From Macrostomum lignano (Eukaryota), in NCBI GenBank assembly GCA_002269645.1, contig NIVC01000001.1, positions 186,001-250,000 on the forward strand: DNA of 64,000 bases, given 5' to 3'. Of the stretch, positions 1,741 to 49,279 are shown piece after piece. Within the stretch, counting starts at the first letter, position 1; each line of letters opens with the position of its first letter. Below the pieces are notes generated by a model. That model saw nothing but the letters and a program-made list of their open reading frames with translations. It had not been told where the DNA came from and searched no databases. The translations under genes and the position numbers were made by a program.

Positions 1741-3234
1741 GGACGTTTGCCATGGGCTATGCAGCAAAAAATTAAGCATTCGGGCAGGACACCCGTTGAG
1801 TTTTCCACGCCATATTTACTGTACCTGGCTTGCTCTGACTGATTTTAAATGAATAATCTAAAGACCTGATGAAACTCCCTCTCCCATATCGACTCACTGT
1901 CAGTATTGGGCTTGCTGCAATGGAGCTGGTTAAGCAAAGTAATAAATTATTTGGATCTAGCCAGCCAATTTCTCACTGCCTCTTCGGCACAAGTCATTTT
2001 ACAATCAACCGCCTCTACTGATTAATTGACAAGGAGCGCGCATAGTTAAGCCACACAATCTAGATTTAAATCCATCGTCCATTACTATTCTGGCTCCAGC
2101 TGGTTAGGCCACAACATCCGCGTCGAATCTCGTTCGTTCGCGCCCAGATTTCCAGACTGCGATTTCTAAACGAGCCCTAACACAACAGATACTGTGGCGC
2201 ACAATGAATTAAGACCACCAGGTAAAATTATTTTATTTTTGGCAAACTCTGGTCATTAGGCTAAATTCAAGTAACTAAATTAAAAGTAAACTTGTAGGAA
2301 TGTTACTTTACTCGTATGTTATTTACGAGCTACATAGCATTTTGGCTCACTTTCCAACAGTTTTTAGTTTAAAAAGCTGAAATTTGAATGAGAAGTACAG
2401 TTTTAGGTTTAACATTGAAATAAGATCATATATAAATACTAGGGAAATAGGTAAAGCAAATGTCACTGATACCAAACTATCTACTCTGCATGTCCTTTTG
2501 ACTTAATCACAGCATTTTATCGCATAGGCATACTGTCCACCAGCTTCTGACACACACACTGCACACTTCTGCCGCGATGGCAGCCCACGAGTCCTCAATG
2601 ATGCGGTACATCTGATCAAGGGAAGCTGGATGCTGCCTCTGGTAGGCGGCTGCTGAGGATGTCACGGTACTTCTGACTGTCCATGATGCCCTCAATGCGA
2701 GTTATTGACCCAGGTCCGGCTCTGGAGAATGTAGCTCACACCATGACATTGCCATCTCCATGCTTCACGATAGCAACAGTGCACCTGGGATCGAATTCCT
2801 CGACACCAACTCTGCGGCGCACATACCGGCAGCCGTCAGAATCAGTGCGGTAAAATTTGCTCTCGTCACTCCAGATGGTCTTGGCCCAGTCCTGGGGTGT
2901 CTGTCCAGATTGCATGCTGCATCGCCCAGTTCAAGCGCCGCTTCCAGTTTTTGTCGGAGATAAATGGCTTCTTAGCAATGCACCTTTATAGCACCTTTTA
3001 ACCCAATTGATGAAGTGGTCTTATTTACTGTGTGACTTATCAAATTCGAAAGTGAGACAAGTGACTCAAATTAAACACGCTAAATTGCAAGTAATTACCC
3101 AACACATCACTAATTTAATTGATTGATACCATGGTTATCTATAACTTATTAGATTAAAATGCTTCCGCAATCTGTGTAGGTTATGAAGTTAAAAGTTCGA
3201 ATTTGTGTTAGTTGGTCTTATTTCATTGTGCGCC

Positions 3235-6062
3235 CAGGGACAACTAAAACCCTCGGGACGCGAAACGAGCCAATTCATGGCAAAAAATCTGAGGGGCTCG
3301 CTTAAAAGTATTGTTCTATGGCTTTTTCAAGTCTTCTCTGCTATCAGGCATTAACGGTTAGATTAAATAGTAAAGCGAGGCAATGTCGAGTATCTAATTT
3401 AAAGAATAGAAACCAGTGATATAATTACAATGTATTTACAATAAAGTAACCGCCATATCAACAAAAAAACTCCAACGGCAAGAAGATAAAAGATGAAAGC
3501 AAAGATGAAACTCCAACGGCAAGAAGATAGAAGCAAATACGGAACTCCAAGGACAAGACGACACAAACAGTCAGTAGCTCGTACATAAAGGAAACGCTGG
3601 AACTTCACCCACTGAGCATCTAACTTCCGAAGCTTTCTATCATGGGATGTCGTCGGTATTGGTGGGAGTTTTGACGAGAGTCTTACTAGTCCTTTGAAAA
3701 AAACGTTGGCTAGCCGACGGGACACACTGTCCATGCTGAACTGTGTCTTAGTTGGAAAGTAAAAGTCCTTAATAACATAAAACAGCTTCTGCACGCGAGT
3801 TGCGCACGTAGGAGAGTGCAGAATAAAACTGCTGTAGCAGAGACAGGATAAGTCTAACAGCCATTGTGGAGGATGGCAAAGCTTTCCGTGAGATAACTCT
3901 TCAGTGAATTCGCTGGCTGGAATGCTCGTCTCTGATATCAAATCTGTTCCTTTGATGCCTTCTTTAGTCGCTGTATAACCTGTCAATTTCCAATTAAGCA
4001 CGGTTTGAATTGTTTTTATGAGATTGTGTAAAACCTCGTTGTGAATTAAATTTTAATTAATATCCAGCTTACCTGCGATATAGTAGAGCGAAGCCATCTC
4101 CGAAATGGAAAGCTCCTCTGATTTAGCAGCACAATTATCAATGATCGCCAGTTCAATTTCATTCAGCTGTTCATTGCAACATTTGCTCCGATCATGCTTG
4201 TAGTCTGCTAATTCAAGGGATGCGAATAATTTCATTCGTCGGAGTCGAGCACTGAGCAGCACTTGCTCCACAGATACATAGTAGTTGCCGCCGCTCATTT
4301 GGCGATACACGCCAAACTCAGCCTCAAGTGGATCACTGTGAAAGTCAGCCAGCAGAACGTAGCTGATTCGTGGGTCGGACAAAAGAACCTCACACATCTC
4401 ACAGGCTCCGCGCAGTGAGTTTACTAGCGCTGACTTGGTCTCGGGCGTCAATGAATGATGGCGAGCTCGGCCTTTTCCACAGTGTCGAATCAAACGAATC
4501 CGCGAGCGCGCTAAGAAATTGTATGCTTTCATCTTGAACGGAATAGACTGGTCGCCTGTCCGGATCCCGTAGTCGTGCGTGTAGATCAGGATTTTTACAA
4601 TTGACAATTTTTCAGAATCTCACTATGGTTTTGATAAATTCCGCAGTGTCTGAGTATCCATCACACTTCAATGCAGCGGCAACCCTTTCATCGAGAACTT
4701 GGAGAGCGAGACTGACTTTAGTTTTCTGAATGCTTGTGGGATAACAGGCCTCATGAGTTAGACATGTGCGCTTGACTACGTGGTCTTTCTCCATTTGGTA
4801 CAGGCGTACCACGTCTGACCATTTAGCGGATATCTGTCTGTCAGCGCCAGGAGGTTGAATGCTTAAAATTCCATTCGCTTCCATTTGCCAATTGTTGCGA
4901 ATGCATTTGATAATGTGAACGAAATCGAACAGCATGAAGACTTCCGACTCATGTGCAGCATCCGTTCCAATCCATGGCTTCTCTCTTCCATCGCTAAATA
5001 AAGCAAAACACTTGCGGTTGGTAGGGTAATTGTCGCTGACGAGAGCAACGACACGGCCACCGTTGTTGTTAATTGCTTTAATACATTGGCTGACGCATTT
5101 TCGCAGAAACTCCGCAGACAAAATTTGTCGGCAATAGTCGGACTACAAACGGTTTTCCACCAAGTAATGGCTTTACCATTATGGCCAAAATTGTCCTAAC
5201 AACCTGGTCCGGATCGTCGACGGCTCGACCCAGAAGGTGACGGCATCGATATCGAACGGACGGTTGTATGTACATTTCGTCAAACATAATTACGCAGTTT
5301 CGCTGAGCTCAATCAAGCAGCTGAAAAGCGTCCATCTCATCGATGTTGCCGCACCTCGCGTCAGAAAGAACACCGCGCTTTTCGGCCTGTCGGTCCTGGT
5401 CTGAAATAAGAGTAAAAATAAAAGTTAGATAATTGTGAGCGGCAAAATCGATATAGACGCTAAGTGTTGAGCAATCTTTAAGTTACGTACCTTGGTTCTG
5501 AACAAAACACGAGCTAGGAACTCCATTAAAAACAGAAGGAGAATTAATTGGCCTTTCGGTACAGTTTTTCTTGACCATTGGAGCATCGCTTGGCCAATGC
5601 TTTACGCACACGCCCATATTGTCAGTCACTCTCTAAAATTTTGGGTTTCAAGTTGTTTGGACGAGACTGGCATGCAGAATTGAAGCGGAATTATGCAGCA
5701 GTAATGACAGCAAATTATCTGGTTTCTTACATGGAGAATATTTGGCAGCGCCTTTCTCCATCGCTCTCGCTCCTGTGGATCTCTGGGAAACCAAATGTCC
5801 GTGTTCGAACGGCTTCAGAGTTGTAATTTGATGAGCACGGAAATACGCTGCACTTTCTTGGCATTTCATCAAGTGAATAAAAAATTCTTCTCTTGATATA
5901 GTTCAGCTTAGCTTCACTGCTGGCCGCAGCTAAAGCAATTTTAATTTGCTTGATAGCAGAGAAGACTTGAAAAAGCCATAGAACAATACTTTTAAGCGAG
6001 CCCCTCAGATTTTTTGCCATGAATTGGCTCGTTTCGCGTCCCGAGGGTTTTAGTTGTCCCTG
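3235..6062 (-). mobile_element. P-superfamily (THAP) DNA transposon, 2828 bp, perfect 112-bp TIRs, 8-bp TSD
   Basis: TIRs 3235-3346 and 5951-6062 are exact reverse complements starting CAGGGACAAC; TSD TGTGCGCC at 3227-3234 and 6063-6070. Confidence 0.95.
3600..5864 (-). pseudogene. THAP-domain P-element transposase, disrupted, with three introns
   Basis: ATG 5864 MPRKCSVFPCSSNY...FGFP...WRKALP...VCVKHWP...PSVF (THAP); then MFDEM, SDNYPTN, FDFVHIIKCIRNNW, SDPLEAEFGVYRQMSGG, LYYIAG|Y. Introns 5730-5633, 5490-5401, 4072-3980 rejoin motifs in frame. Frameshifts near 5790, 5110 and 4480; in-frame TGA near 5310 and at 4612. Confidence 0.88.
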
Positions 6063-6079: not shown

Positions 6080-6905
6080 GTACAACAAAATACGCTGTCA
6101 GTGTCACATGGCGCCTCAGGGCCAAGTCACGAATGAACGCCACGCCGCCGGCGTCAGCCAGCAGGCAATCAACGAAACGCCAAGTGCGGGCGCCTGCCCT
6201 CGCCGGTAGGGTGCCTGCAGCGTCAGCAGCAGCACCTCCTGCACCGGCTGTGGACAGTACGTCTCTGCGCGGATGATGTGGCCTGTCAGCTGGAGTCGCC
6301 GATGGCGCCACAGGTCGCTTCGGCGCGATAATACAAAGCCGCGTTGGTCACTCGCTCGTAGCCGATCTTGAACGCTTGAGCGAATCCATCAGCGTCCAGG
6401 CCTCGGCGTTGTACAACAGGACGGACTCGACCACCGCCTGGAACAACGCCGCCCTCTGGCGGTCAGGTAGGGCCTTGGACTGCAGGACTGCCTTCACAGA
6501 ACGAAAAGCAGCCTAGGCAAGGCCAGGGCGACGCTGCAAATACTCGCGGACGCCGGAAACCAGACCGCCGTGGTAGACGAACTGCTGACAACGCGAAAGC
6601 TCTGTCGCCTGTCCATCAGCGCCTTGAAACAAGATCTCAGCCTCGATGTCGTCTGGCACGCAGAGCACGACGGTCATCTGCGTGTTGACCACCAGGCCGA
6701 CACTCGCCGCAACAGCAACTAGCTTGTCCAGTTGTCGCTGGGCGCCCTCGACAGTTGAGGACAGCAGGCCGGCAAGGTCGTCGGCGTAGCCAAGCACGCT
6801 GAGTCGTCTCTCCGCACGTCGTCGAACCACGCGTCGCCGCAACAGAAAGCCGTCATCGTTAGTAGGTAGACTATCCGCAGCAATCTCGCTGTCTGCAACT
6901 CGCAT
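6080..6905 (-). mobile_element. RTE-clade non-LTR retrotransposon, 3' fragment
   Basis: LGYADDLA...VGLVVNTQ...FVYHGGL; clearly related to the copy at 21461-23951; short AAC tail at about 6083. Confidence 0.88.
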
Positions 6906-7790: not shown

Positions 7791-9039
7791 CCGTATGTCA
7801 ATCAGCAAATCAATTATAAAGAAGACACAAACCAATTGGTTTCCAATTCCTGCACCCATGCAGGAAAGGCCCAAAAATGATGGACCAAATGTGTTTCTAT
7901 GTATATAGTTAAATATATAAAATATATATATGCATACCATGGTGTCCATAGGCAGTGTGGACAATCAGGGCAATGTCCACAAAGCAGCTCGCGGCAGTAC
8001 CAAATTCAAACAAATTGCAATATTCGTTAAAACAATTATAAACAATAAAGCACGCAGCATGCATTAAGATATGAAGAATACTAAATTTCAAAAGGGTATT
8101 AAATTGTTTAAATTAATTTAGCAGCATATTCAATTGCAAACAGGCATCTCACAATTCCCGTCTCCGTGGATCATAAGCATTATATAATCATATACTAGAT
8201 CTATTATTGATGTTAACCAGCATTGAGAACAACAATTATAAGCTTTTCATAACAGTCAAAAGCTGCTACAGGCTTCAAAACTCCAAAGATTCGGGCCTCT
8301 TAAAGCATCAAAGGCGTGCATTGGAAAATCGAGGCGAGAGCAGTGCGAAATTTTTTGTTTTACAAATTTCCAGTCATAGTCGCATTCAACTACTGATTCA
8401 GTAGAAACACGCGCAGGCAAATTATATGAAGCCAAAGCGCTGTGATGATCAATCTGGGAGTTAATTAGGTGCCAATTAAAAACACAAGCATAAGTAGGTG
8501 AAAGCTACAGGTGACAATATAATAACTATAAATATGCTAATATAAAAAACTCGCAGAATTCTCTTTTTCAACAACACGACCTTATATGTACTACTTTAAG
8601 CACTAAAGACGCAAAAGGAAGGCTGCATAATATTAATTAGATCAGGAGAAGAGCAGGATAGACGGCGGTTAAAGTGCACATGTACTGCAGAATGCGACAT
8701 GTAAATAATAGACAGATCTTTATGCATATATAATTAAACAATATGGAAAACATTGGGCTCGCATGTCTGTACAAAACTCTCTCTGCATGGACAGACTATC
8801 CCGGCAAAAAATGATTTATTAATTGTTCAACTATTAAGTAATAAAACAACACAATAAGCAATGCGTTGTTCACGGCGTGCTCTACTAGTAGTAATATATA
8901 AGCATTCGCTGAATATATAATGTAATTACAAGCATAAAAGTTATATATGCATACCGGATTAGCAAGAAACCGATAAACAAAGCATTATTAGAATTCTAGC
9001 AATACTCAATGCTACTCGTAGTAGCAACTTCAATTTGTG

Positions 9040-9823: not shown

Positions 9824-12800
9824 TCAAGCCTGCTGGCTGGCGTCTTTAGCAGCCAGAATCAGCGGCGTGAGACTGCTCAAAGGTTTAGCCAGCCGAATAA
9901 ACGGATGGCTGAGCAGCTCGCTAGCCGTGGCTCGCCGATCGACATCGACTTCAAGGCAGCGGTCTAAGAAGTCCTGGAATACTGGCGACAGCTTCTGACG
10001 GTCCTTGATGTGCGGCTTGCCGTTGGAGGCGATCAGGTAAAGCGCGCGCAGCGGGTTCTCGTTCAGGTAGGGCGGCTCACCGTCGATCATCTCGATGGCC
10101 ATGATGCCTAACGACCAGATGTCCACCTTGGGGCCGTAGGCCTTGCGGGACACCAGCTCCGGGGACATCCAGTAGGGCGTGCCGACCATCGTGTGCCGCT
10201 GGCCGCCGCCCTCCAACTGGGCGCAGAAGCCGAAATCCGTCAGCTTCACAGAGCCGTCCATGCCTGAGTCAGGGGCAGATGGGGAGGGTTGTACAGCTCT
10301 GCGATTCTCATATGGGGTTGTACATGTACAGCTCTGCGATTCTCATATGGGGTTGTACATGTACAGCTCTGCGATTCTCATATGGGGTTGTACATGTACA
10401 GCTCTGCGATTCTCATATGGGGTTGTACATGTACAGCTCTGCGATTCTCATATGGGGTTGTACAGCTTGGCGATTCTCATATGGGGTTGTACAGCTCTGC
10501 GATTCTCATATGGGGTTGTACAGCTCTGCGATTCTCATATGGGGTTGTACAGCTCTGCGATTCTCATTTGGGGTTGTACAGCTCTGCGATTCTCGTATGA
10601 GGTTGTACAGCTCAGTGATTTTCATATCGGGCTGCAGGGCAATTCTTATATCAGGCGGTGCCTACGGCCAACAAACAACAAATAGGCGGACAAAACAAGG
10701 TTAATAATGGAATAGATAAACATAAAAAACCGAACTTTAAGAAAGTCATGCAAACATGTGCAAGTATTCTGCCCGCAAACTCTCTACAAAAATTTCTTGA
10801 CTTAGTCTTAGTACCCGAAAGCTTTGCGACATAAACTGCCCTGTCTAGATGAGCTGAGACTAACTAAAATCAATGCATAGTGTATCCATAATGCTATACA
10901 ATAGCCTAATGATATATGGATGGATCAAGCATAATTCTATAGTTTTGTTACATGCTGACTTGTTATGCAGATCAGTTTTAATGCATTTGGTCTAGCGCTC
11001 TCTCCCTCTCTCTCTCTCTCTCTCCCCTAAACTCTGCGCACATCGGCATGGCTGGCAGAGAATGCAGGCAAATATGACTTTAATAAAATATGTGCACCGT
11101 TACCCGTAGCATCGGCCGCGCAAACACAAATACGCCTTATGTGCGTTTTTATGACTGCTAATTGGAATTAACTGACGCAAGCAAAACCGGTGGATACGGA
11201 CGGGCGGTGAATAGGGACAGATAGAAACAATAGTGAATAGGAACAGGTAGAAACACCGGTGAATAGGGACAGGTAGAAGCACCGGTGAATAGGGACAGGT
11301 AGAAGCACCGGTGAATAGGGACAGGTAGAAGCACCGGTGAATAGGGACAGGTATAAACACCGGTGAATGCGGACAGGTAGAAGCACCGGTGAATAGGGAC
11401 AGGTATAAACACCGGTGAATGGGAACAGGTAGAAACACCGGTGAATAGGAATAGAAACACCGGTGAATAGGGACAGGTAGAAACACCGGTGAATGGGGAC
11501 AGGTAGAAACACCGGTGAATGGGGACAGATAAAACACCGGTGAATGGGAAGGAACAGTTTGCTGGTGACAAGATGAACTGAATTTTCCCAATGCCATAAA
11601 AATACAGAGCAAGACTCACCCAGCAGCACATTATCGCTCTTTATATCGCGATGGATGACGCCGTTTTCGTGCAGAAATTCCAACGCTTTCAGCACCTCTT
11701 TGCACACGGCTCCGATCTGGCCTTCGTCCATGCAGGTCTCGGTAACAACATCGGTCAGGGACCCGCCGGCCAAGTAGTCCATGACAACCCAGAGCTCCTC
11801 GCCAACCAAATAGCTGTCCATGTAGTTCACAATGTTCGGATGCTTATTCTCCTTCATCACTAGAATCTCATTAATAATGAGATCTTTCTTGGGCTGCTGG
11901 GCCAGGTTCATCTGCTTAATGGCCACCTCGCGGCCAGTGGCCACCTCCCGGCCCATGTGGACGACCCCGGACGCGCCCTGGCCGATCTGGCCGATCTTCT
12001 CGTACTTGGCTGACGGCGCCCCGGCGCTCACGATGAAGCGCAGCCTCTCCTGAACCTCGGCGTCTGTCAGCTTCTTCTTCTGGGGCCGCTTCTGCTGGCG
12101 CGGTTGCTGTTGCAGACTCTGCTGTTGCTGCTGCTGCTGTTGTTGTTGTTGCTCCGGTTGTTGCGAAACAGATCCGCCATTGTTTACAGAAAGCTTTTGC
12201 TGCTGCGGCTGCTTCTCCGTTACGGATTTCTGCTGCATTAGCGGCGTCTGAGGTGGCTGCTGCTGCTGCTGCTGCTGAAACTGAGGCGGTTGCTGACCAG
12301 GAGCTGCCTGCGGCGGCGGGGTCACCGGCTTCGTCCAGACAGATTTGGTCTTCTCCGGCCGCTGTGCGATGGGGGGCGGAGGCGGGGTGGCTGCGTCGGA
12401 CGCAGCGGATCCGGAGCCGGAGGGCTGCGGGAAGCGGCGGGGATTAAGGGTGAATTTTTAATTTATCTGGAATTCTCAATCAATCTGAGAGTTATGGGGA
12501 TCAATACGAATATTAGGGATACGATGGGGACAAATCTGAGGATTAAGAAGACAATGGGGATCAAGCTGAGGATTAAGAAGACAATGGGGATCAAGCTGAG
12601 GATTAAGAAGACAATGGGGATCAAGCTGAGGATTAAGAAGACAAGGGGGATCAATCTGAGGATTTGGGATACGATGAGGATCAATCTGAGGATTAGGGAT
12701 ACGATGGGGATCAATCTGGGGATTAAGAAGACAAGGGGGATCAATCAGAGGATTAGGGATACGATGGGGACCAATCTGGGGATTAGGAAGACAAGGGGGA

Positions 12801-13939
12801 TCAATCAGAGGATTTGGGATACGATGGGGATCAATCTGGGGATTAGGAAGACAAGGGGGATCAATCAGAGGATTTGGGATACGATGGGGACCAATCTGAG
12901 GATTAGGGGTTGATGATTCGAAAGATGACAAGTAAAAGACATAAAATCTGGGAGTTGTAGATAAGACAGGGGATTAAGGGAAAACTCACGGACAGCACTG
13001 CTCTTGGAGCGCACAAAATAAAAGCTTTCATCTTACCCGAAACCCTGCGCCAGGCGCCTCAGCGGCGCCAACGTCACCCGAGCCGAGCGCCGAGCCGACA
13101 GAGTCGTTGCTAGGCAACCGAAACGACGCCTGCGCCCCAGCAGCCGAAGACGCAGGAACGGGGCCACCGGCTGAGGAAGAGTTACCCTCGTGCGGCACGG
13201 TGGTCATGTACTTGTCCCGTTCAATATGATGGAAATACTGCAGCACATCGAGCACAGCCTGTGGATTCTGCTGCTGTTCCTGCTTGCTAATATTCGAGGT
13301 CTTCAATAAGTTGTTCCACACCTCAGGCATGCCGGTGAACTCCTGCCTATTGTGATCGTAGCTCACGTGCATTGTGTGCTGGAAGTTGTGCGGACTGGAA
13401 ATGCTCGGCTTTGGCGCGTCTTTCAGCATGTTGAGGGCCGCCGCCGCCGCGGCTGATGAAGGCGAAGAGGCCGCGCCTCCAGATGAGGATTTGCCGCCGA
13501 AGAAGGAAATCTTCTCCTTCTTGCCGCCGCTGCTGCCGGACTTGTCCTTGGCCTTGCTGGATTTGCTGCCGCCGCTGCCCAGGCTGCTCGAGGAGCCGCC
13601 GCCCCATTTCTTCTGGTCCGGGGTGTGCGGCAGCGGCTTGCTTGGCGGCGGAGGCAGGGCCTGCTGCTGCTGCTGCTGGCTGGCGGGACTCCCGCCACCG
13701 ACTAAGCGCGAGCTGCTGCTGGCGAGGCGCATCGGCGGCGCCGGCGGTCGTTCATCGGCTTCGGACTGCTGGTGCCAGCGCTGCGGCTGCTGCTGCTGCG
13801 GCTGGAACTGATGAAGCTGGCCCGGCTTATAATGATGAAATTGATGCGGCGTCCGACCGCCGCCTCCGCTGCCTGTGGCGCTCATGCCGCTGCCGCCGCT
13901 GCTGTGCGAATGGGCGGCGTCATTTTGGTGGCGGTGCAT
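9824..13939 (-). CDS. PAK: Group I p21-activated kinase (PAK1-3-like), about 715 aa
   Basis: Exons 13939-13037, 12424-11620 and 10263-9824 with GT/AG ends sum to 2148 nt in frame. Motifs: [13 protein letters not shown] ([13 protein letters not shown]), [45 protein letters not shown]. Confidence 0.96.
10290..10620. repeat. 29/35-bp minisatellite at the acceptor end of PAK intron 11619-10264
   Basis: Unit GTACAGCTCTGCGATTCTCATATGGGGTT(GTACAT). Confidence 0.95.
11190..11550. repeat. 26-bp minisatellite near the donor end of the same PAK intron
   Basis: Unit CACCGGTGAATAGGGACAGGTAGAAG. Confidence 0.95.
12470..12905. repeat. 30-bp minisatellite filling PAK intron 13036-12425
   Basis: Unit GATTAAGAAGACAATGGGGATCAAGCTGAG and variants. 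Confidence 0.95.
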
Positions 13940-40740: not shown

Positions 40741-43700
40741 ATGGCTCATAATCCTAGTCAGCAGCCTGATGTCCCAAAAACTGAACTTGAAGAGATTCAA
40801 ATGGTTATGAACCAGAAAACTGATGAGGTGAGTTGATGCGTACTATTTATTTCTTGTTATGCAAATTCTTTATGCTAAGTCAACATCAATATTTATGTTC
40901 ATGTATACATGTAAAGCTTACAACTACTTGATGTCTTCATGTCTTTTTCCTAACTTCCTTTTTATATAGACAGTAGGAATATCTACTAGTATATATCGTA
41001 ATAGACTTTTTTGCTAGTGTTTGTCATGTTCATGAATTTTTCATATTATTGTACTGTTAGTAGTCAATATATATTTATCTCTTTTTTGTGCTTAGTAGTA
41101 ATAAAAATCAAATTTTACAGAAATCATCCTCTTTTAACCTTAATAGCTTGTAATATAGTTCGCCTGTGTTTGTCTTTGAATTTGAGAAAGAATTTAATCC
41201 TCTCTGTTTTGAACTTTTAGTTTGTAAAATTTTACATACATTAGTCATAAGGAATGAATATATATAAGAAAGATCTTTCATTGGTTGAGAAGTGAGAATG
41301 TCGACTTTGGGGTCTCAACCAATACCTTTAGTAGGCCTGGCTTGTTTCCCCATAAAATATACTCAAAACACAGAATTTTATGAATGCTGACTTATCAGAT
41401 AATTTAGTAGAGGCCTACAGTGTGTAATGTCTGTGCCTAGTGCTAGCGGAGTTATTGCTGATTCTGCCCAATGGCTACTGGACGCCAAAGGAGAGCCGCA
41501 ACCCCTAACCGAAGCCGAAGAGCTGCTGCTAGATGTTGATGGGTGCCAGAGAGTTGTAAGAATGACTGTGCTGTTGTGCTTGTGTCCATCTGTGCGTTTG
41601 TGTTCATCTGTGCTATCTGTCCATCTATGCTGTTGTGCTTGTGCGCATCTGTGCGTCTGTGTCCATCTGTGCTATCTGTCCATCTATGCTGTTGTGCTTG
41701 TGCCCATCTGTGCGTCTGTGTCCATCTGTGCTATCTGTCCATCTATGCTGTTGTGCTTGTGCCCATCTGTGCGTCTGTGTCCATCTGTGCTGTTATGCTT
41801 GTGCGCATCTGTGCGTCTGTGCCCATCTGTGCTGTTGTGCTTGTGCCCATCTGTGCGTCTGTGCCCATCTGTGCTATCTGTCCATCTATGCTGTTGTGCT
41901 TGTGCGCATCTGTGCGTCTGTGTCCATCTGTGCTGTTATGCTTGTGCGCATCTGTGCGTCTGTGCCCATCTGTGCTATCTGTCCATCTATGCTGTTGTGC
42001 TTGTGCCCATCTGTGCGTCTGTGTTCATCTGTGCTATCTGTTCATCTATGCTGTTGCGCTGTCTGTTTATCTGTTCTGTTGCGCTGTCTGTTCATCTGTG
42101 CTGTTGCGCTGTCTGTTCATCTGTGCTGTTGCAAAAGTATAGGCATTAAATTTTTTAAAATTTTGTTCCGATTTCAGTATTACGAACTAAGCTTAACCTT
42201 CAATTTTTGTAGTTTGTAACTACATCGCTTTCGCTTTATCATTACAGTCTCTGGAGTCTACTCGGCGCATGGTTACCCTCTGCGAAGAGGTGAGCATTTT
42301 TGCTGTTTTTTTTTCTGTTCGTGCTTGGCTTAACGTATTCTTCTTAAGCCTCTTAATTTAGCAATTATTGACTCTAACTTTCACTTAGTTAAATATAAAT
42401 TTTTAATAACTAATTTGTTTTCTTTGCCGTGCCGAATATTCATAGTGAATGATTTTATAAATTCAGCAATGCTATATATGCTACGAGCTACAAATATAGA
42501 TTTAAAAAGTTAAAATTATATCCTTAGTAAAACTGCGTTTCTACTTCCAGTTCAGTAGCAAAGAAGAATACATAAGCTATTTTATAAAAATTAAAGCAGC
42601 TGAAATGGCTTTAAATGTTTAAAAGTCAAGAGCTTGCAGTCGTAAACAACTTGCTAATTGATTTAGCCATATGTACATTAGCCAGCGTCACTGAAATGTA
42701 CATGGCAGCTGAGACTGGAATGCCCAGAAAGGCAATAAAAATGGGCGGCGGGCGGAGGTAGAGGTTCTGTGTGGAAAGGCGCAATTAGACGGTTTCAGCT
42801 TAGGGGGTTAAGAGCCAATGAATGAGCCTCGTCTTAAAAAAACATTAAAATTTTTGTTTAACTTGCTACCAGAGTAAATAGTCAAGGCTGCTAAATTGAC
42901 TTTGATAAGTTAGAAGCCCAAGCTTGCAGGCGTAAACAGTTTGCTAATTGGTTCAGCAGTAATGTACATTAGCCAGTCCACTGAAATGTACATAGCAGCT
43001 TTAGGCTGAAAATTCCGAGAAAGGCAATAAAAAATGGGGGGTGGGGGTAGTGTGGAAGGGGAGGCTTCACAAGCGCTAATTTTCATAAGCGCTAACTCAC
43101 CTACTTTCACAAGCGCTAAATTTCACAAACGCTAAACTTCATAACCGCTAACTCACTTACTTTCACAAGCGCTAAACTTCATAATAGCTACAAATTCGCC
43201 ACCTACTTTCACAAACGCTAAATTTCACAAGCGCTAAACTTCAGAATAGCAAAACCACTTACTTTCACAAGCGCTAAACTTCACATTAGCTACGAATTTG
43301 TCACCTACTTTCACAAGCGCTAAACTTCACAAACGCTAAACTTCACAACCGCTAAAACACAAATGTCGCCTACTTTCACAAGCGCTAAACTTCACAAACG
43401 CTAAAACACAAATGTCGCCTACTTTCACAAGCGCTAAACTTCACAAACGCTAACCTTTACAATCCCCAAAACACGAATGTCGGTTTCTTTTACAAGCGCT
43501 AAAATGTTAATTTACTATATATACTAATATACTAATACTAATATACTATACTAATATACTAATATACTATTTTAGCGCTTGTGAAGTTTAGCGCTTGTGA
43601 AAGTAGCCGACATTCGTATTTTAGCGGTTTTTAACGTTTAGCGTTTGTGAAGTTTAGCGCTTGTGAAGTTTAGCGCTTGTGAAAGTAGGCGGCAAATTTT

Positions 43701-46700
43701 TAGCTATTATGAAGTTTAGCGCTTGTGAAAATTAGCGCTTGTGAAAGCGACCCGTGTGGAAAAGCGCGGTTGGAGGGTTTAAGCGGGGGGGGGTATAAGC
43801 CAATAAATGAGCCTTGGCTTTAAAAATACATTAAAATGGTTCTGTTTAACTTACTACTGAACTGAAAGTAGCTTACACGCAAATGTGCTGAGTGGCCTAT
43901 CTAGTTATTCTAGTTTATAAGACAAAGGAATGATAGGTTTCATAGGTAAGTCCCCCCTGACTTCTCCCTGTTTCCTTCAATATTGAGTTGGATTTCCTAA
44001 TAAATATCATTTATTATACGAGTATGATTGCAGTTAACACGGTTTACTCTGGTACCCAATAGCACAATGTTTTACACTGCCAGCATTCTATTTACTCTGT
44101 GCTATTACATTAGATTTGAATTGCAGCAGAGTTATCAGTTATAATATTCAGTACACGTATTTTTTGACTCTCAGGCTAAAGAGGCGGGCATATCCACTCT
44201 TGTCATGCTAGACGATCAGGGCGGTGAGTATGTAATAATAAACCTAAATCTAGCATAGCGCAACTATGAAATCGGATGTGTTGCCAATTATTTGTTAATT
44301 ATTTTTTAATGTTTTTTTAATGCCAGCGAAAATTGCATTCGATTGATTTGAAGGGGGAGGTTCATTCGGGTGATTTTTCAATTTTGTGCGCGTTTTTTTG
44401 TTTTTTGTGCAAGGTTGGTGCTGTCATTATAGGAGCTACTGGGTGAATCAATGAGTCTGTTAGTATTAAGCAGGAGTCGGCAAACTCTTCTCCATCCGGC
44501 CCTTGGATCCTTTAAAACTTCACAATAGCAATCCGACCCGCTAATCTCCTCTCTCCCCTCGTCTCTCCTCTCATCTTCTCACCCACCCCGTCTTTTCTTT
44601 CCTCTCTCATCTTGCCCGCAGCTATTAGCTAAGTGTCTACCAGGCTCTTAAGGTAAAAAAGGTTTGCCGACTCCTGTTAAAGAGTTTATATGGTGGTATT
44701 TATCTGAAATTTAAGCGCAGTAGATCTTATTCCCTGCTTGTAGTCTACTGGTCATGCGTTTATGCGTCAGCATAATGCATCAATTTGTGTGTTAATTTAA
44801 TTATAGTTGATGGATAAACGTTGGATTATCCTTCTTGATTTTTGTTATAATCTTGTCAGCCTCCGCCCCTCTGAGCTGCCTGCTTTTTGCGCGGTGTCTT
44901 GTTGCTTTCCTGCCGTTAGTCTTGTGCTTATTAACAGTTATAATCCCTTTCATTCGAATGAGTTGCGCTTATTAGCAATATAATGGGGTAGACAGGTGAC
45001 CTTACGGATACTTAAACTCGATGATTGGGTTCATAAGGCCTAAATTTCGTATCGCAAAAAAATTCAAGCATCCACCTTTAGGGAACTTTTATTTAATCCA
45101 ATGCCCCTGACTGGGGGCCAGAGAGAAGAGAGAGAATATCTAAGGAGAAGATAGGAGCGAGCATAGGGGAGAGGAGACAGGAGAAAGGAGAGAAGACAGG
45201 AGAGAGGAGAGATGGGAGAAGGGAGAGGAGAGAAGGGAGAAGGGAGAGGAGAGGAGTGGAGAGATGGGAGAAGGGAGAGGAGAGATAGGAGAAGGGAGAG
45301 GAGAGATGGAAGAAGGGAGAGGAGAGATAGGAGAAGGGAGAGGAGAGATGGAAGAAGGGAGAGGAGAGATGGGAGAAGGGAGAGGAGAGATAGGAGAAGG
45401 GAGAGGAGAGATGGAAGAAGGGAGAGGAGAGATGGGAGAAGGGAGAGGAGAGATGGGAGAAGGGAGAGGAGAGATGGGAGAAGGGAGAGGAGAGATGGAA
45501 GAAGGGAAAGGAGAGATGGGAGAAGGGAGAGGAGAGATGGGAGAAGGGAGAGGAGAGATGGGAGAAGGGAGAGGAGAGATGGGAGAAGGGAGAGGAGAGA
45601 TTGGAGAAGGGAGAGGAGAGATGGGAGGGAGAGGAGAGATGGGAGATAGGAGAAGGGAGAGGAGGGATAGGAGAAGGGAGATGAGAGATAGGAGAAGGGA
45701 GAGGAGATTAGAGAGAAGAGAGCTGGGAAGAGACAAACCTTTATTGCTATTGTCAAGTTTCAAAGGACCCGAATGACGGATAGGAAAGTTTCGCTTGTCG
45801 CGGTTTTGCTGAGCCTTGTTTAATGCGATGCAAAAATTACGTCTTATGAACTTTTAGGTCTTATGAAGTTATCAAGCGCCCTCTTTGACTGACAGACAGG
45901 TATTCGCTAATCCATCTTGATTAATATCTTTGCTTATTAATAATTGACATGATGGCTATCTATTTAATTTTAAATAAAGACTTTATTGATTCATCATTTA
46001 GGCTAGAGAGTCTGGACTTCAAGCAATTGTAATGCTTGATGATCAAGGAGGTTTGTTTGATATTTTTTCTTCTAAATACTAAAAGTCAGGGTCGTGAAAT
46101 TCTACTAAAATTTAATTAACAAAATATTGATTAGGCTTAAATCAGGGTGTGTTTTGGTACTAAATTTGAAGAATGCCAGCTGTTGTCTTTGTTGCTTTGA
46201 GTCTTTATTCGGCTTATATTCTCATAATTATCATATTCGGTAGCGAGATGCACCACAGGTTTACTTGGGTTATTGATGCGCATAATTAGATATTCAGTAG
46301 GTTATTGCAACCCAAGTTTATCACCTGTAATAAATCCATTGATTAACAGAGCAACTGGACCGCATCGAGGAGGGCATGGACCACATTAATCAGGACATGA
46401 AAGATGCCGAGAAGAATCTGGACGATCTTAACAAGTGCTGCGGACTCTGCATCCTGCCTTGGAATAAGTGAGTTGTTGCTCAACTTTCTGTTCCCCAACC
46501 TGTGTGTTCCCCAACCTGTGTTCCCCAACCTGTGTGTTCCCCAACCTGTGTGTTCCCCATCCTTTGTGTTCCCCAACCTGTGTGTTCCCCATCCTTTGTG
46601 TTCCCCAACCTGTGTGTTCCCCAACCTGTGTTCCCCAACCTGTGTGTTCCCCAACCTGTGTGTTCCCCATCCTTTGTGTTCCCCAACCTGTGTGTTCCCC

Positions 46701-48541
46701 AACCTGTGTTCCCCAACCTGTGTGTTCCCCAACCTGTGTTCCTCAACCTGTGTTCCCCAACCTGTGTGTTACTTATTCCATTTGTACATGTATAATTTGT
46801 ATACATGCTCAAATTCATATTAGGAAGCATCTGTTTCTTCTTGCTGATGATTCTATTAATAGAAAATACGGGCCAGAAATGTAGAGTTCATGTCACGTGA
46901 TGGGGCCGAGAATTGTAGATACACTGGTAGAATTCGTGCTTGAATTATTTATCAACATTTACTTGGTCTGTGGGACAAGAAAATTATATAGAGGCTGGGA
47001 TAGAAAAATGTTGGTTTAGAGTTCCTGTGTGAGCGAGTCTGGAAGGGAAACAGGAGGCTGCATTTGTCATTTCTTCGAATCTTTATATGGATTGCCCGGC
47101 CAACCAGCTAATTACGCGCGTATCTTAGTTGGCTATTATTGGCATTAATATTATTATAACCCTAAGTAAAGTTTCTTTAGTTGGTTTAGAGACAAAGGTT
47201 TACTTATCTGCACAAGTATGCCTGTATCTAATGCCTCTGTCTGTCTTTTGTCTGTATCTAATACCTCTGTCTGTCTTGTGTCTCTATCTAATACCTCTGT
47301 CTGCCTTGTGTCTCTATCTAATACCTCTGTCTGTCTTGTGTCTCTATCTAATACCTCTGTCTGTCTTGTGTCTCTATCTAATACCTCTGTCTGTCTTGTG
47401 TCTCTATCTAATACCTCTGTCTGTCTTGTGTCTCTATCTAATACCTCTGTCTGTCTTGTGTCTCTATCTAATACCTCTGTCTGTCTTGTGTCTCTATCTA
47501 ATATCTCTGTCTGTCTTGTGTCTCTATCTAATACCTCTGTCTGTCTTGTGTCTCTATCTAATGCCTCTGTCTGTCTTGTGTCTCTATCTAATATCTCTGT
47601 CTGTCTTGTGTCTCTATTTAATGCCTCTGTCTGTCTCGTGTCTCTATCTAATGCCTCTGTCTGTCTTGTGTCTCCACCTAACGCCTCTGGCTGTCTTTTG
47701 TCTCCATCTAATATCTCTGTCTGTCTTTTGTCTCTATCTAATGCCTCTGTCTGTCTTGTGTCTCTATCTGATACATCTGTCTGTCTTGTGTCTCTATCTA
47801 ATATCTCTGTCTGTCTTTTGTCTCTATCTAATGCCTCTGTCTGTCTTGTGTCTCTATCTAATATCTCTGTCTGTCTTTTGTCTCTATCTAATGGCTCTGT
47901 CTGTCTTGTGTCTCTATCTAATGCCTCTGTCTGTCTTGTGTCTCTATCTAATGCCTCTGTCTTGTGTCTCTATCTAATACCTCTGTCTGTCTTGTGTCTC
48001 TATCTAATGCCTCTGTCTGTTGCTAATGTTTGTTTTCTTTGCCGACTCCAACCTCTCTTTTAGTTTCAATATGCTAATCGCAATAAATCATCTTCCTACT
48101 CAGAGCCGGCAAAGGCAGTTTCGACAAGAACTTCAAAAAAGACGAGGATGGCACAGTTAACACTAGCGGGCCGCGCGTTGTTATGGACCAGAACGGCATG
48201 GCGCATCAGGGCGGCTACGTGACTAGGCGAGTATCTGCTGCCAGCTGTGCTTTGCTGCGCTTACCCTACTTTAACTGTTTTAACTTAGTTTTGCATCTTC
48301 AATGCAACTGCAGGATCACCAAGGACGCCAGAGAGGACGAGATGGACAATAATCTGCAGGATGTCAGCACCATGGTTGGCAACCTGCGCAATATGGCCAT
48401 CGATATGGGCAGCGAGATTGAATCGCAGAACAGGCAACTCGACCGCATTAAGGATAAGGTGAGCTTCAGTATTGGCCTCTGTCTTTCATTCGTAGTGCCT
48501 CTCTGTCTTTCGTTGTCTTAGTGTCTGTCTGTCTGTCTATC

Positions 48542-48574
<33 letters not shown>

Positions 48575-48615
48575 ATGTCTGTCTGTCTGTCTGTCTGTCT
48601 ATCTGTCTGTCTTAG

Positions 48616-48712
<97 letters not shown>

Positions 48713-48827
48713 TGTCTTTCTGTTCGTTTGTCTGTCAGTTTCTGTCTACCACAGTATTTTCTACCATAGTGTCTGTCCGTCTCCTTAAAGTATCCGCCAG
48801 CCTGTCTGCCAGAGTGTTTATCTGCCC

Positions 48828-48895
<68 letters not shown>

Positions 48896-48910
48896 GTCTG
48901 TCTTAGTGCC

Positions 48911-48955
<45 letters not shown>

Positions 48956-48972
48956 CTCTGTCTGTCTATCTC

Positions 48973-49007
<35 letters not shown>

Positions 49008-49279
49008 TTCTGTTCGTTTGTCTGTCAGTTTCTGTCTACCACAGTATTTTCTACCATAGTGTCTGTCCGTCTCCTTAAAGTATCCGCCAGCCTGTCTGCC
49101 AGAGTGTTTATCTGCCCGTCTGGCTGCCTGTCTGTTTTGCTTGTGTCTGTGACCTGTAAACTTCCCTCTGGTCTAACAGAATTTAATAGAATTTGAATTT
49201 TCTCCCTTAACTACAGGGCGACTCTAACCAGACCCGTATTGAAGAGGCCAACAAGCGGGCCAACAAGATGCTGAAATGA
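40741..49279 (+). CDS. SNAP25: SNAP-25 (Qbc SNARE), 208 aa
   Basis: Exons 40741-40827, 42248-42289, 44175-44223 or 46002-46050, 46350-46467, 48104-48226, 48314-48458 and 49217-49279 give 627 nt in frame: [61 protein letters not shown]. Confidence 0.96.
41427..41555 (+). CDS. SNAP25: Probable alternative first coding exon (1b) of SNAP-25
   Basis: ATG 41427, 43 codons, phase-0 donor GTT|GTAAGA; its end [18 protein letters not shown] aligns without gaps to exon 1a [18 protein letters not shown]. Confidence 0.68.
41565..42130. repeat. TG-rich complex minisatellite directly after the exon 1b donor
   Basis: Repeats of TGTGCT/TTGTGCCCATC/TGTGCGTC; source of the Cys/Val-rich ORFs. Confidence 0.9.
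43059..43753. mobile_element. Foldback MITE (family 2) in a SNAP-25 intron
   Basis: Arms of (T)TTCACAAGCGCTAAAC subrepeats inverted about a (TATACTAA)n core; ends GGGAGGC...GCGACCC; TSD GTGTGGAAG/GTGTGGAAA; it interrupts the second copy of a local duplication (about 42641-42885 vs 42932-43870). Confidence 0.85.
44175..44223 (+). CDS. SNAP25: SNAP-25 exon 3a ([16 protein letters not shown])
   Basis: 49 bp, TCAG| acceptor and |GTGAGT donor. Confidence 0.92.
44471..44676. mobile_element. hAT-like MITE
   Basis: Perfect 15-bp TIR CAGGAGTCGGCAAAC / GTTTGCCGACTCCTG; no clean TSD. Confidence 0.65.
45170..45720. repeat. 21-bp purine minisatellite between exons 3a and 3b
   Basis: Unit GAGAAGGGAGAGGAGAGATGG. 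Confidence 0.95.
46002..46050 (+). CDS. SNAP25: SNAP-25 exon 3b ([16 protein letters not shown])
   Basis: 49 bp, TTTAG| acceptor and |GTTTGT donor, same phases as 3a, no stop. Confidence 0.88.
46488..46770. repeat. 14-16-bp minisatellite after the SNAP-25 exon 4 donor
   Basis: Unit CCCCAACCTGT(GT)GTT. Confidence 0.93.
47215..48020. repeat. 30-bp minisatellite before the SNAP-25 exon 5 acceptor
   Basis: Unit TCTCTATCTAATACCTCTGTCTGTCTTGTG. Confidence 0.95.
48500..49150. repeat. (TGTC)n microsatellite with an internal duplicated block
   Basis: TGTC runs; block 48715-48830 recurs at about 49005-49125. Confidence 0.92.

Follow-up and report, generated by a model that had tools for sequence, protein, structure and literature searches.

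We examined a 64,000-nucleotide stretch of the Macrostomum lignano genome (contig NIVC01000001.1, positions 186,001 to 250,000; hereafter the window), the plus strand of which carries a SNAP-25 gene. The segment at positions 41427-41555 of the window is, in our judgement, very probably a genuine alternative first coding exon of this gene, which we refer to as exon 1b or the type B first exon, the upstream first exon being exon 1a or type A. Alternative first exons of SNAP-25 are already known from Caenorhabditis elegans and are present in the public annotation for Schistosoma and molluscs. What is new is that exon 1b is present in all three M. lignano paralogs, that flatworms and an annelid have the layout 1A-1B-2 in common, and that both kinds of N-terminus are found among mollusc isoforms. 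The scaffold NIVC01000001.1 was 100% identical to the window.

The order of the exons on the plus strand is exon 1a (coding part 40741-40827), exon 1b (41427-41555) and exon 2 (42248-42289). Exon 1a contains 29 codons and ends at a phase-0 donor, GAG followed by gtgagt, and the N-terminus encoded by it is identical to that of UniProt A0A1I8H8I6 (P0003). Exon 2 contains 14 codons with phase 0 on both sides, and serves as the common acceptor exon of 1a and 1b. Exon 1b contains 43 codons counted from its own ATG, and its frame stays open to a GT donor in phase 0, placed exactly one codon ahead of the sequence SLESTRR.

An earlier inspection, here called the sequence-only reading, had described this segment as the non-repetitive head of an open reading frame (ORF) of 240 amino acids (41427-42149), and the description held. 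All 43 codons are located 5' of the minisatellite array identified by Tandem Repeats Finder (TRF; 41566-42132, periods 42/59/101/143), and they end with the codon GTT at a strong phase-0 donor (GTAAGA, 41556-41561; junction 41555/41556), which is the phase needed by exon 2. The donor is identical in the close homeolog of the window gene (locus L008) and agrees with GT[G/A]AG, the consensus of M. lignano donors (PMC8629364). The last 18 amino acids of exon 1b align without gaps to exon 1a, with 5 of the 18 residues identical. The length of the ORF provides no coding evidence, because none of the three plus frames meets a stop within the minisatellite (the ORFs measure 240, 199, and 194 amino acids), which is intronic and non-coding; the frame of exon 1b itself is open only from position 41403, that is, from 51 codons ahead of the donor.

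The two older paralogs are P0001, encoded at loci L001, L002, and L005, and P0002, encoded at loci L003 and L004. The order exon 1a, exon 1b, exon 2 was the same in all five loci, the exon-1b element between the other two starting in each case with an ATG of its own and staying open up to a phase-0 GT donor, which is placed at the homologous codon. The paralogous exon 1b of P0001 encodes 41 residues and ends at the donor gtgcgt (L001 14406-14528, L002 14254-14376, L005 10001-10123), while that of P0002 encodes MAGAEEPADATAPPLTEADEIMLLVDRAQTE and is followed by gtaaac (L003 12424-12516, L004 12436-12528). The homeologous exon 1b in L008 ends at position 6596. In blastn comparisons with L001 and L002, the exon-1b core at 41478-41524 was a non-repeat island alignable at the DNA level; the other non-repeat islands were known exons plus one short unexplained intronic match, and the remainder consisted of minisatellites.

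The divergence between these copies is compatible with a coding function. The proportions of synonymous (pS) and non-synonymous (pN) differences in exon 1b were 0.62 and 0.21 in the comparison with L001 and 0.71 and 0.25 in the comparison with L003, and those of the conserved core of 26 codons (41478-41555) were 0.61 and 0.25 in the comparison with L001. In the same paralog comparisons, exon 1a had pS values of 0.90 to 1.00 and pN values of 0.11 to 0.19, and all other exons taken together had pS values of 0.56 to 0.67 and a pN value of 0.08. The paralogs must be old, since synonymous sites across the whole gene are close to saturation. Within a stretch of 12 codons, exon 1b differed from a paralog by synonymous changes at 6 of the 12 codons and by only 1 residue change. 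Exon 1b thus evolves as a coding sequence, with pN below pS between old copies and a constraint that is near that of exon 1a and weaker than that of the core exons.

To compare the encoded peptide with SNAP-25 proteins of other animals, every stop-free 18-mer in a six-frame scan of the window (58,598 in total) was scored against the exon-1 ends of 135 SNAP-25 proteins from species other than Macrostomum. Exon 1a ranked first with a score of 67 and the end of exon 1b (41502-41555) ranked second with a score of 45. The match of the exon-1b peptide is beyond chance, because it was placed 2 of 58,598 and the next best peptide scored only 32. In the hit lists, the SLESTRR exon, which is invariant, was preceded in many spiralians by one of 2 kinds of N-terminus. 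Type A follows the pattern ..(T/S)EL.E(I/L)Q...N..TDE, and examples of type B ends are PMTEVELLQRKIDETTSD in Schistosoma, MTEDELLQFDIDKNTNE in Capitella, TPTEDEQLQIDINEGTAE in Lamellibrachia, and LLTEEEQVLLAMDQTVHE in rotifers. The N-termini closest to exon 1b in the window were of type B, namely those of Liolophura (PITEAGQLQLDIDDATRE), P0021 (TPTEAEQMQLDIDGGVLE), rotifers, and the Logan transcript P0122 (LDANGNPILTEAEQLQLEIKNATLE), and 9 of the 12 nearest neighbours of the exon-1b 18-mer were type B, the best score being 45. Expressed as log-odds of type B over type A, exon 1b gave +30 and exon 1a gave -32, a contrast that is partly circular in that two of the positions helped to define the sets. 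Types A and B both have hydrophobic residues at positions 8 and 12 of the 18-mer. When the N-terminal 18-mers were clustered by average linkage, the two types were not cleanly separated; they were sorted instead by nearest neighbours and a rule-based split.

The same architecture was identified at the genomic level in two other species. In Schistosoma haematobium (L007), exon 1A (3001-3084), exon 1B (5579-5701) and exon 2 (6092-6133) follow each other in this order, and both isoforms are annotated (P0015 and P0009). In Capitella teleta (L010, KB292627.1), exon 1A is located at about 8199-8333, exon 1B at 10001-10051, and exon 2 at 10292-10333; here exon 1B is annotated and exon 1A, which starts with MSKGKAG, ends with IRTELQDLQMQMNVATDE and is followed by gtgaat, is unannotated and located 1.7 kb 5' of the annotated start. 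The S. haematobium protein P0015 and the Pomacea isoform X4 (P0020) had no record as gene products, in the former case presumably because only the longest isoform per gene is stored. It was also noted that the Capitella locus contains what appear to be three tandem versions of exon 3 (10878, 11237, and 11582) and of exon 4 (12320, 12555, and 12910), within 10878-12948.

The claim that the window contains a second first coding exon of SNAP-25 was thus borne out: position, ATG, frame, donor phase, and peptide motif are kept in two old paralogs, and the architecture recurs in Schistosoma and Capitella. The accompanying description of this exon as a diverged copy of exon 1a has to be revised, as it is an old type B exon of flatworms, annelids, molluscs, and rotifers rather than a private, recent copy. 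Types A and B probably share an origin by exon duplication, as suggested by their equal length to the boundary, their equal phase and the shared start P-x-T-E-x-E. A broader and more tentative proposal, to which we give somewhat less than even chances, is that the pair of a distal 1A and a proximal 1B exon is an ancient module, so far undescribed as such, of Platyhelminthes, Annelida, Mollusca, and Rotifera, possibly homologous to the nematode exons ric-4a and ric-4b. The traits that members of such a module may share are the order, the phase and the helix-extending motif TExE..L...(I/V)D.

Nematode SNAP-25 proteins in the hit lists (P0143, P0090, and P0103) had a B-like N-terminus, MSDELQ.LNV.I(D/E)...., which in P0103 reads MSDELQGLNVDIEERCVE. 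In P0143, a nematode-like metagenome protein, an apparently retained intron of 63 nucleotides was seen between the B-like end and SLESTRR, and the B-like exon is therefore likely to be the proximal first exon, as is ric-4b.

Several observations weigh against exon 1b being a functional first exon of the window gene. An exact look-up of the predicted isoforms (1a or 1b combined with 3a or 3b) and of the paralogous 1b isoforms in a collection of 15 billion proteins returned only the 1a form of L001, and the homology searches yielded no protein that joins exon 1b to exon 2. A profile search with the three N-termini composed of exon 1b, exon 2, and exon 3 likewise gave no spliced M. lignano 1b protein, and recovered only P0136 and type A or B fragments of other animals. 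The absence of the 1b isoforms says little, because the full 1a isoform of the window gene was missing as well and no Logan-derived SNAP-25 of M. lignano was present either. The acceptor motif at 41415-41420 is no more than expected by chance: with both strands of the window taken together, 326 copies of the motif YTNCAG were counted compared with 324 expected, and its chance of occurring within 30 nucleotides 5' of any given ATG is about 8%. The terminal residue of exon 1b in the window is a valine, where both older paralogs and, with three exceptions, the listed N-termini have a glutamate or aspartate, and the end reads GCQRV in the window and L008 versus RAQ(N/T)E in the other paralogs. Finally, exon 1b in the window and in L008 differed by 5 substitutions, all of which were non-synonymous and located in the first 26 codons; this pattern is compatible with neutrality (P about 0.24), and the first 25 residues may be unconstrained.

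One alternative, which we consider unlikely, is that the exon is real in the family and has become a decaying or unused relic in the window paralog, its shape kept by descent and only exon 1a being used. The GCQRV end in place of RAQxE, the loss of the near-universal terminal acidic residue and the 5 non-synonymous against 0 synonymous changes between the window and L008 all fit this explanation, as does a slightly longer branch for the window copy (about 5.5 compared with 3.5 and 4.5) calculated from amino acid distances of 9, 10, and 8 of 20. Exon 1b is also outside the GenBank coding sequence (CDS) of the window gene, but this silence is uninformative because the CDS omits exons 1a, 2, and 3 as well. 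Decay is, however, difficult to reconcile with the finding that both homeologs have kept the ATG, the 43 codons and a donor of consensus grade although their synonymous divergence from the paralogs is close to saturation, that the window donor GTAAGA is better than gtgcgt or gtaaac in the paralogs, and that the 18 C-terminal codons are the same in the window and L008. Apart from the intact frame, the comparison with L008 contains no selection signal, the two sequences being 93% to 99% identical throughout, in exons as in introns.

That the open frame is simply a chance feature at the head of a stop-free minisatellite, with no function, is something to which we give hardly any credence. It is true that the repeat accounts for the length of the ORF, that 51 open codons 5' of the repeat are not rare, and that the acceptor motif occurs at chance frequency. 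Yet chance would have to account for the rank of the 18-mer in the six-frame scan, for an element whose position, ATG, frame, donor, and motif recur in two old paralogs at a pN far lower than pS, and for the same architecture in Schistosoma and Capitella.

A different question is how the 5' end of exon 1b is formed. The sequence-only reading had noted, correctly, that a CTACAG motif, a possible 3' splice acceptor for cis-splicing or for a spliced leader (SL), ends at 41420, 6 nucleotides 5' of the ATG. The intervening TGTGTA (41421-41426) is in frame and free of stops, giving a segment of 135 nucleotides at 41421-41555 with a phase-0 donor. The sequence-only reading had raised the option of an in-frame cassette between exon 1a and exon 2, which would add 45 residues to the N-terminal helix. 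We consider this very improbable, since the 135-nucleotide in-frame unit exists in the window only. A deletion of 2 nucleotides in the GTGTGT run reduces it to 133 nucleotides in L008, and in L001 and L002 the corresponding segment measures 124 nucleotides from the nearest AG and, when read in from exon 1a, meets a TAA after two codons. In L003 and L004, an in-frame TGA is located six codons 5' of the ATG with no AG between them. Furthermore, the annotated Schistosoma isoforms carry one first exon or the other. A first exon is favoured over a cassette because its own ATG is kept in every copy.

For such a first exon, trans-splicing is one conceivable route. In M. lignano, 30% to 39% of the genes are trans-spliced to a leader of 35 nucleotides that ends in ATG (PMC5730564, PMC8629364), and the motif [T/C]TNCAG is enriched at the SL acceptors (PMC8629364). 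A motif of this kind was present 5' of the exon-1b ATG in the window (CTACAG) and in L008 (CTGCAG) and absent from L001 and L003. If joined at this acceptor, the ATG of the leader would be in frame in the window and out of frame in L008.

We propose that a transcript starts at or just 5' of exon 1b, either from a promoter of its own or by SL trans-splicing near 41421, and that translation would begin at the ATG at 41427. Splicing of the donor at 41555/41556 to the start of exon 2 (42248) would remove the intronic minisatellite, and the product would be a SNAP-25 protein of 222 amino acids with 43 residues in place of the type A N-terminus of 29 residues. The first residues of exon 1b, about 25, vary among the copies and are poorly modelled, whereas the last 15 to 18 would lengthen the first SNARE helix at the N-terminus, away from the membrane. 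If ric-4a and ric-4b are a guide, the most likely role of the two first exons would be to place SNAP-25 expression in different neurons, or in other secretory cells, under separate control and to give the protein different N-terminal ends. What the comparisons show is the gene structure and its conservation, the selection signature and the helix prediction; that exon 1b in the window is transcribed, that its use and that of exon 1a exclude each other, and that this use depends on cell type is what we infer.

The structural part of this proposal was modelled with AlphaFold2 from an alignment of type B proteins. The model contained a single helix from residue 29, the first glutamate in PLTEAEE, to residue 61, which spans the junction between exons 1b and 2, with predicted local distance difference test (pLDDT) values of 72 to 79. 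Residues 1-13 had pLDDT values below 50, and residues 14-28 were non-helical with values of about 55 to 72. As modelled, exon 1b would thus give the first SNARE helix a different N-terminal extension, on the side away from the membrane, and add a variable tail. The SNARE layers, which we take to be encoded from exon 2 onward, would then be untouched by the exchange of 1a and 1b.

Two further claims in the sequence-only reading were upheld in part. The extra cysteine is indeed encoded by exon 1b in the window, but the residue is an alanine in both older paralogs and a cysteine is not seen among the listed type B ends of other species, and we would attach no meaning to it. Up to four versions of the Qb helix, obtained by combining the first exons with exons 3a and 3b, are possible for the window gene only, since only the window and L008 have an exon 3b.

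As for gene models, the GenBank annotation of M. lignano was built solely from RNA-seq-derived transcripts that were cut at SL and poly(A) sites (PMC5730564). Exon 1b of M. lignano is included in no SNAP-25 annotation of any of the three paralogs, and is found only as a 58-amino-acid "hypothetical protein" on one contig. The GenBank gene BOX15_Mlig011916g1 (P0136), entered as a gene of its own, is exactly the exon-1b ORF of a paralog continued past the donor, and its contig stops short of exon 2; this gene model is an indirect hint of a transcript for the paralogous exon 1b. The GenBank CDS of the window gene (P0224; BOX15_Mlig006816g1 / Mlig016640g1, 140 amino acids) has its first methionine inside exon 4, from position 46376 of the window onward, and leaves exons 1a, 1b, 2, and 3 outside the coding annotation.

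In the window, a search with a SNAP-25 probe identified seven more exons 3' of the segment in question, all on the plus strand. These are exon 2, exon 3a (44175-44223; 16 codons plus 1 nucleotide), the amino acid sequence of which is identical across all paralogs, a candidate exon 3b (46002-46050; 16 codons plus 1 nucleotide) with the same length and phase as 3a and a weak donor, gtttgt, and exons 4 (46350-46467), 5 (48104-48226), 6 (48314-48458), and 7 (49217-49279). Exon 3b was present in the window and L008 and absent from the older paralog loci L001 to L004. The 1a isoform corresponds to the M. lignano protein A0A1I8H8I6, save for errors in the model of that entry. We noted that the donor of exon 5 is of the GC type (AG followed by gcgagt; 48224-48232 in the window and about 13826 in L008), where L003 and L004 have gtgaga, and the lack of VTRITK at the end of exon 5 in A0A1I8H8I6 is probably due to this GC donor.

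The introns of the gene are rich in repeats. The minisatellite at 41566-42132 has no counterpart in L008, where about 50 nucleotides of the motif are left and the gap between exon 1b and exon 2 is only 177 nucleotides. In L003 (12535-13033) and L004 (12547-12726), a tandem repeat of 21 nucleotides, unrelated to the minisatellite in the window, starts about 19 nucleotides past the exon-1b donor; that both the P0002 paralog and the window have a repeat just past this donor is probably a coincidence in a repeat-rich genome. A segment of 70 nucleotides located after exon 2 in the window (42523-42594) was about 80% identical to a segment located after exon 1a in L001 (10571-10639) and L002 (10566-10638), and could represent a short mobile or regulatory element. 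In intron 2, the minisatellite units at 43065-43503 and 43571-43745 are reverse complementary (TTTCACAAGCGCTAAA and TTTAGCGCTTGTGAAG) and form a large inverted structure, and the block at 43050-43750 has no counterpart in L008. The intron between exons 3a and 3b contains a purine-only (GA) tract of about 600 nucleotides (45100-45700) with a GC skew of 1.0 and an AT skew of about 0.8, and similar GA tracts were found 3' of the paralog gene in L001 and L002. The minisatellite in the last intron (48478-49150) belongs to a repeat family that is common to several paralog introns and flanks, including the intron between exon 1b and exon 2 in L001 (14824-15290, opposite strand). A dispersed repeat or transposable element as the source of 41250-41565 was considered and rejected, as no other copies were found in the window or the fetched loci. 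There were no Rfam matches in the region from 38 to 50 kb of the window, and a scan for bacterial promoters and terminators, which has no bearing on a eukaryotic gene, gave background levels only.

The analysis corrects the models of all three SNAP-25 paralogs in M. lignano, which is a transgenic flatworm model. Through exon 1b, a pan-neuronal marker gene would have a second point of entry for regulation, which could serve as a promoter for subtype-specific reporters, while the knowledge of how SNAP-25 works is unchanged by this exon. The layout shared by flatworms and an annelid, together with the two N-terminus types among mollusc isoforms, suggests that the release machinery has long been diversified through alternative SNAP-25 N-termini and that this device is conserved. 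If the proposal of an ancient module is true, two differently regulated SNAP-25 N-termini have been kept in protostome nervous systems for more than 500 million years, and the type B end has a distinct partner or assembly property.

Alternative exons are also known from vertebrates, in which SNAP-25a and SNAP-25b are produced by the mutually exclusive exons 5a and 5b (PMC7073020, PMC12256890). Like the M. lignano pairs, these are tandem exon duplicates of equal length and phase that encode alternative versions of the first SNARE helix region. However, they are internal exons, covering the C-terminal end of helix 1 and the cysteine cluster, and not first exons, which makes them nearer in position to 3a and 3b than to 1a and 1b. 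A closer parallel is found in C. elegans, where the ric-4/SNAP25 gene has a distal (ric-4a) and a proximal (ric-4b) first exon, the proportions of which differ by neuron type (PMC12084653). In ric-4, as in the M. lignano gene, two first exons precede one common downstream exon, and the proteins differ only at the N-terminus. The likeness is one of layout; the exons are short, their homology in sequence is no more than possible, and the nearest neighbours of exon 1b are spiralian; expression data are available for the worm, whereas the M. lignano case is known from sequence. Among the molluscs, RefSeq isoforms X1 to X6 in Pomacea, Biomphalaria, and Physella include both N-terminus types, a likeness at the protein level. 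The Schistosoma and mollusc isoforms are publicly annotated, unlike the M. lignano exon, and the window copy ends with a valine instead of a glutamate or aspartate. The gene of S. haematobium has the order 1A-1B-2, first exons that each start with a separate ATG, a phase-0 donor, and, before SLESTRR, the motif x-T-E-x-E-x-L-x-x-x-(I/V)-D, all as in M. lignano.

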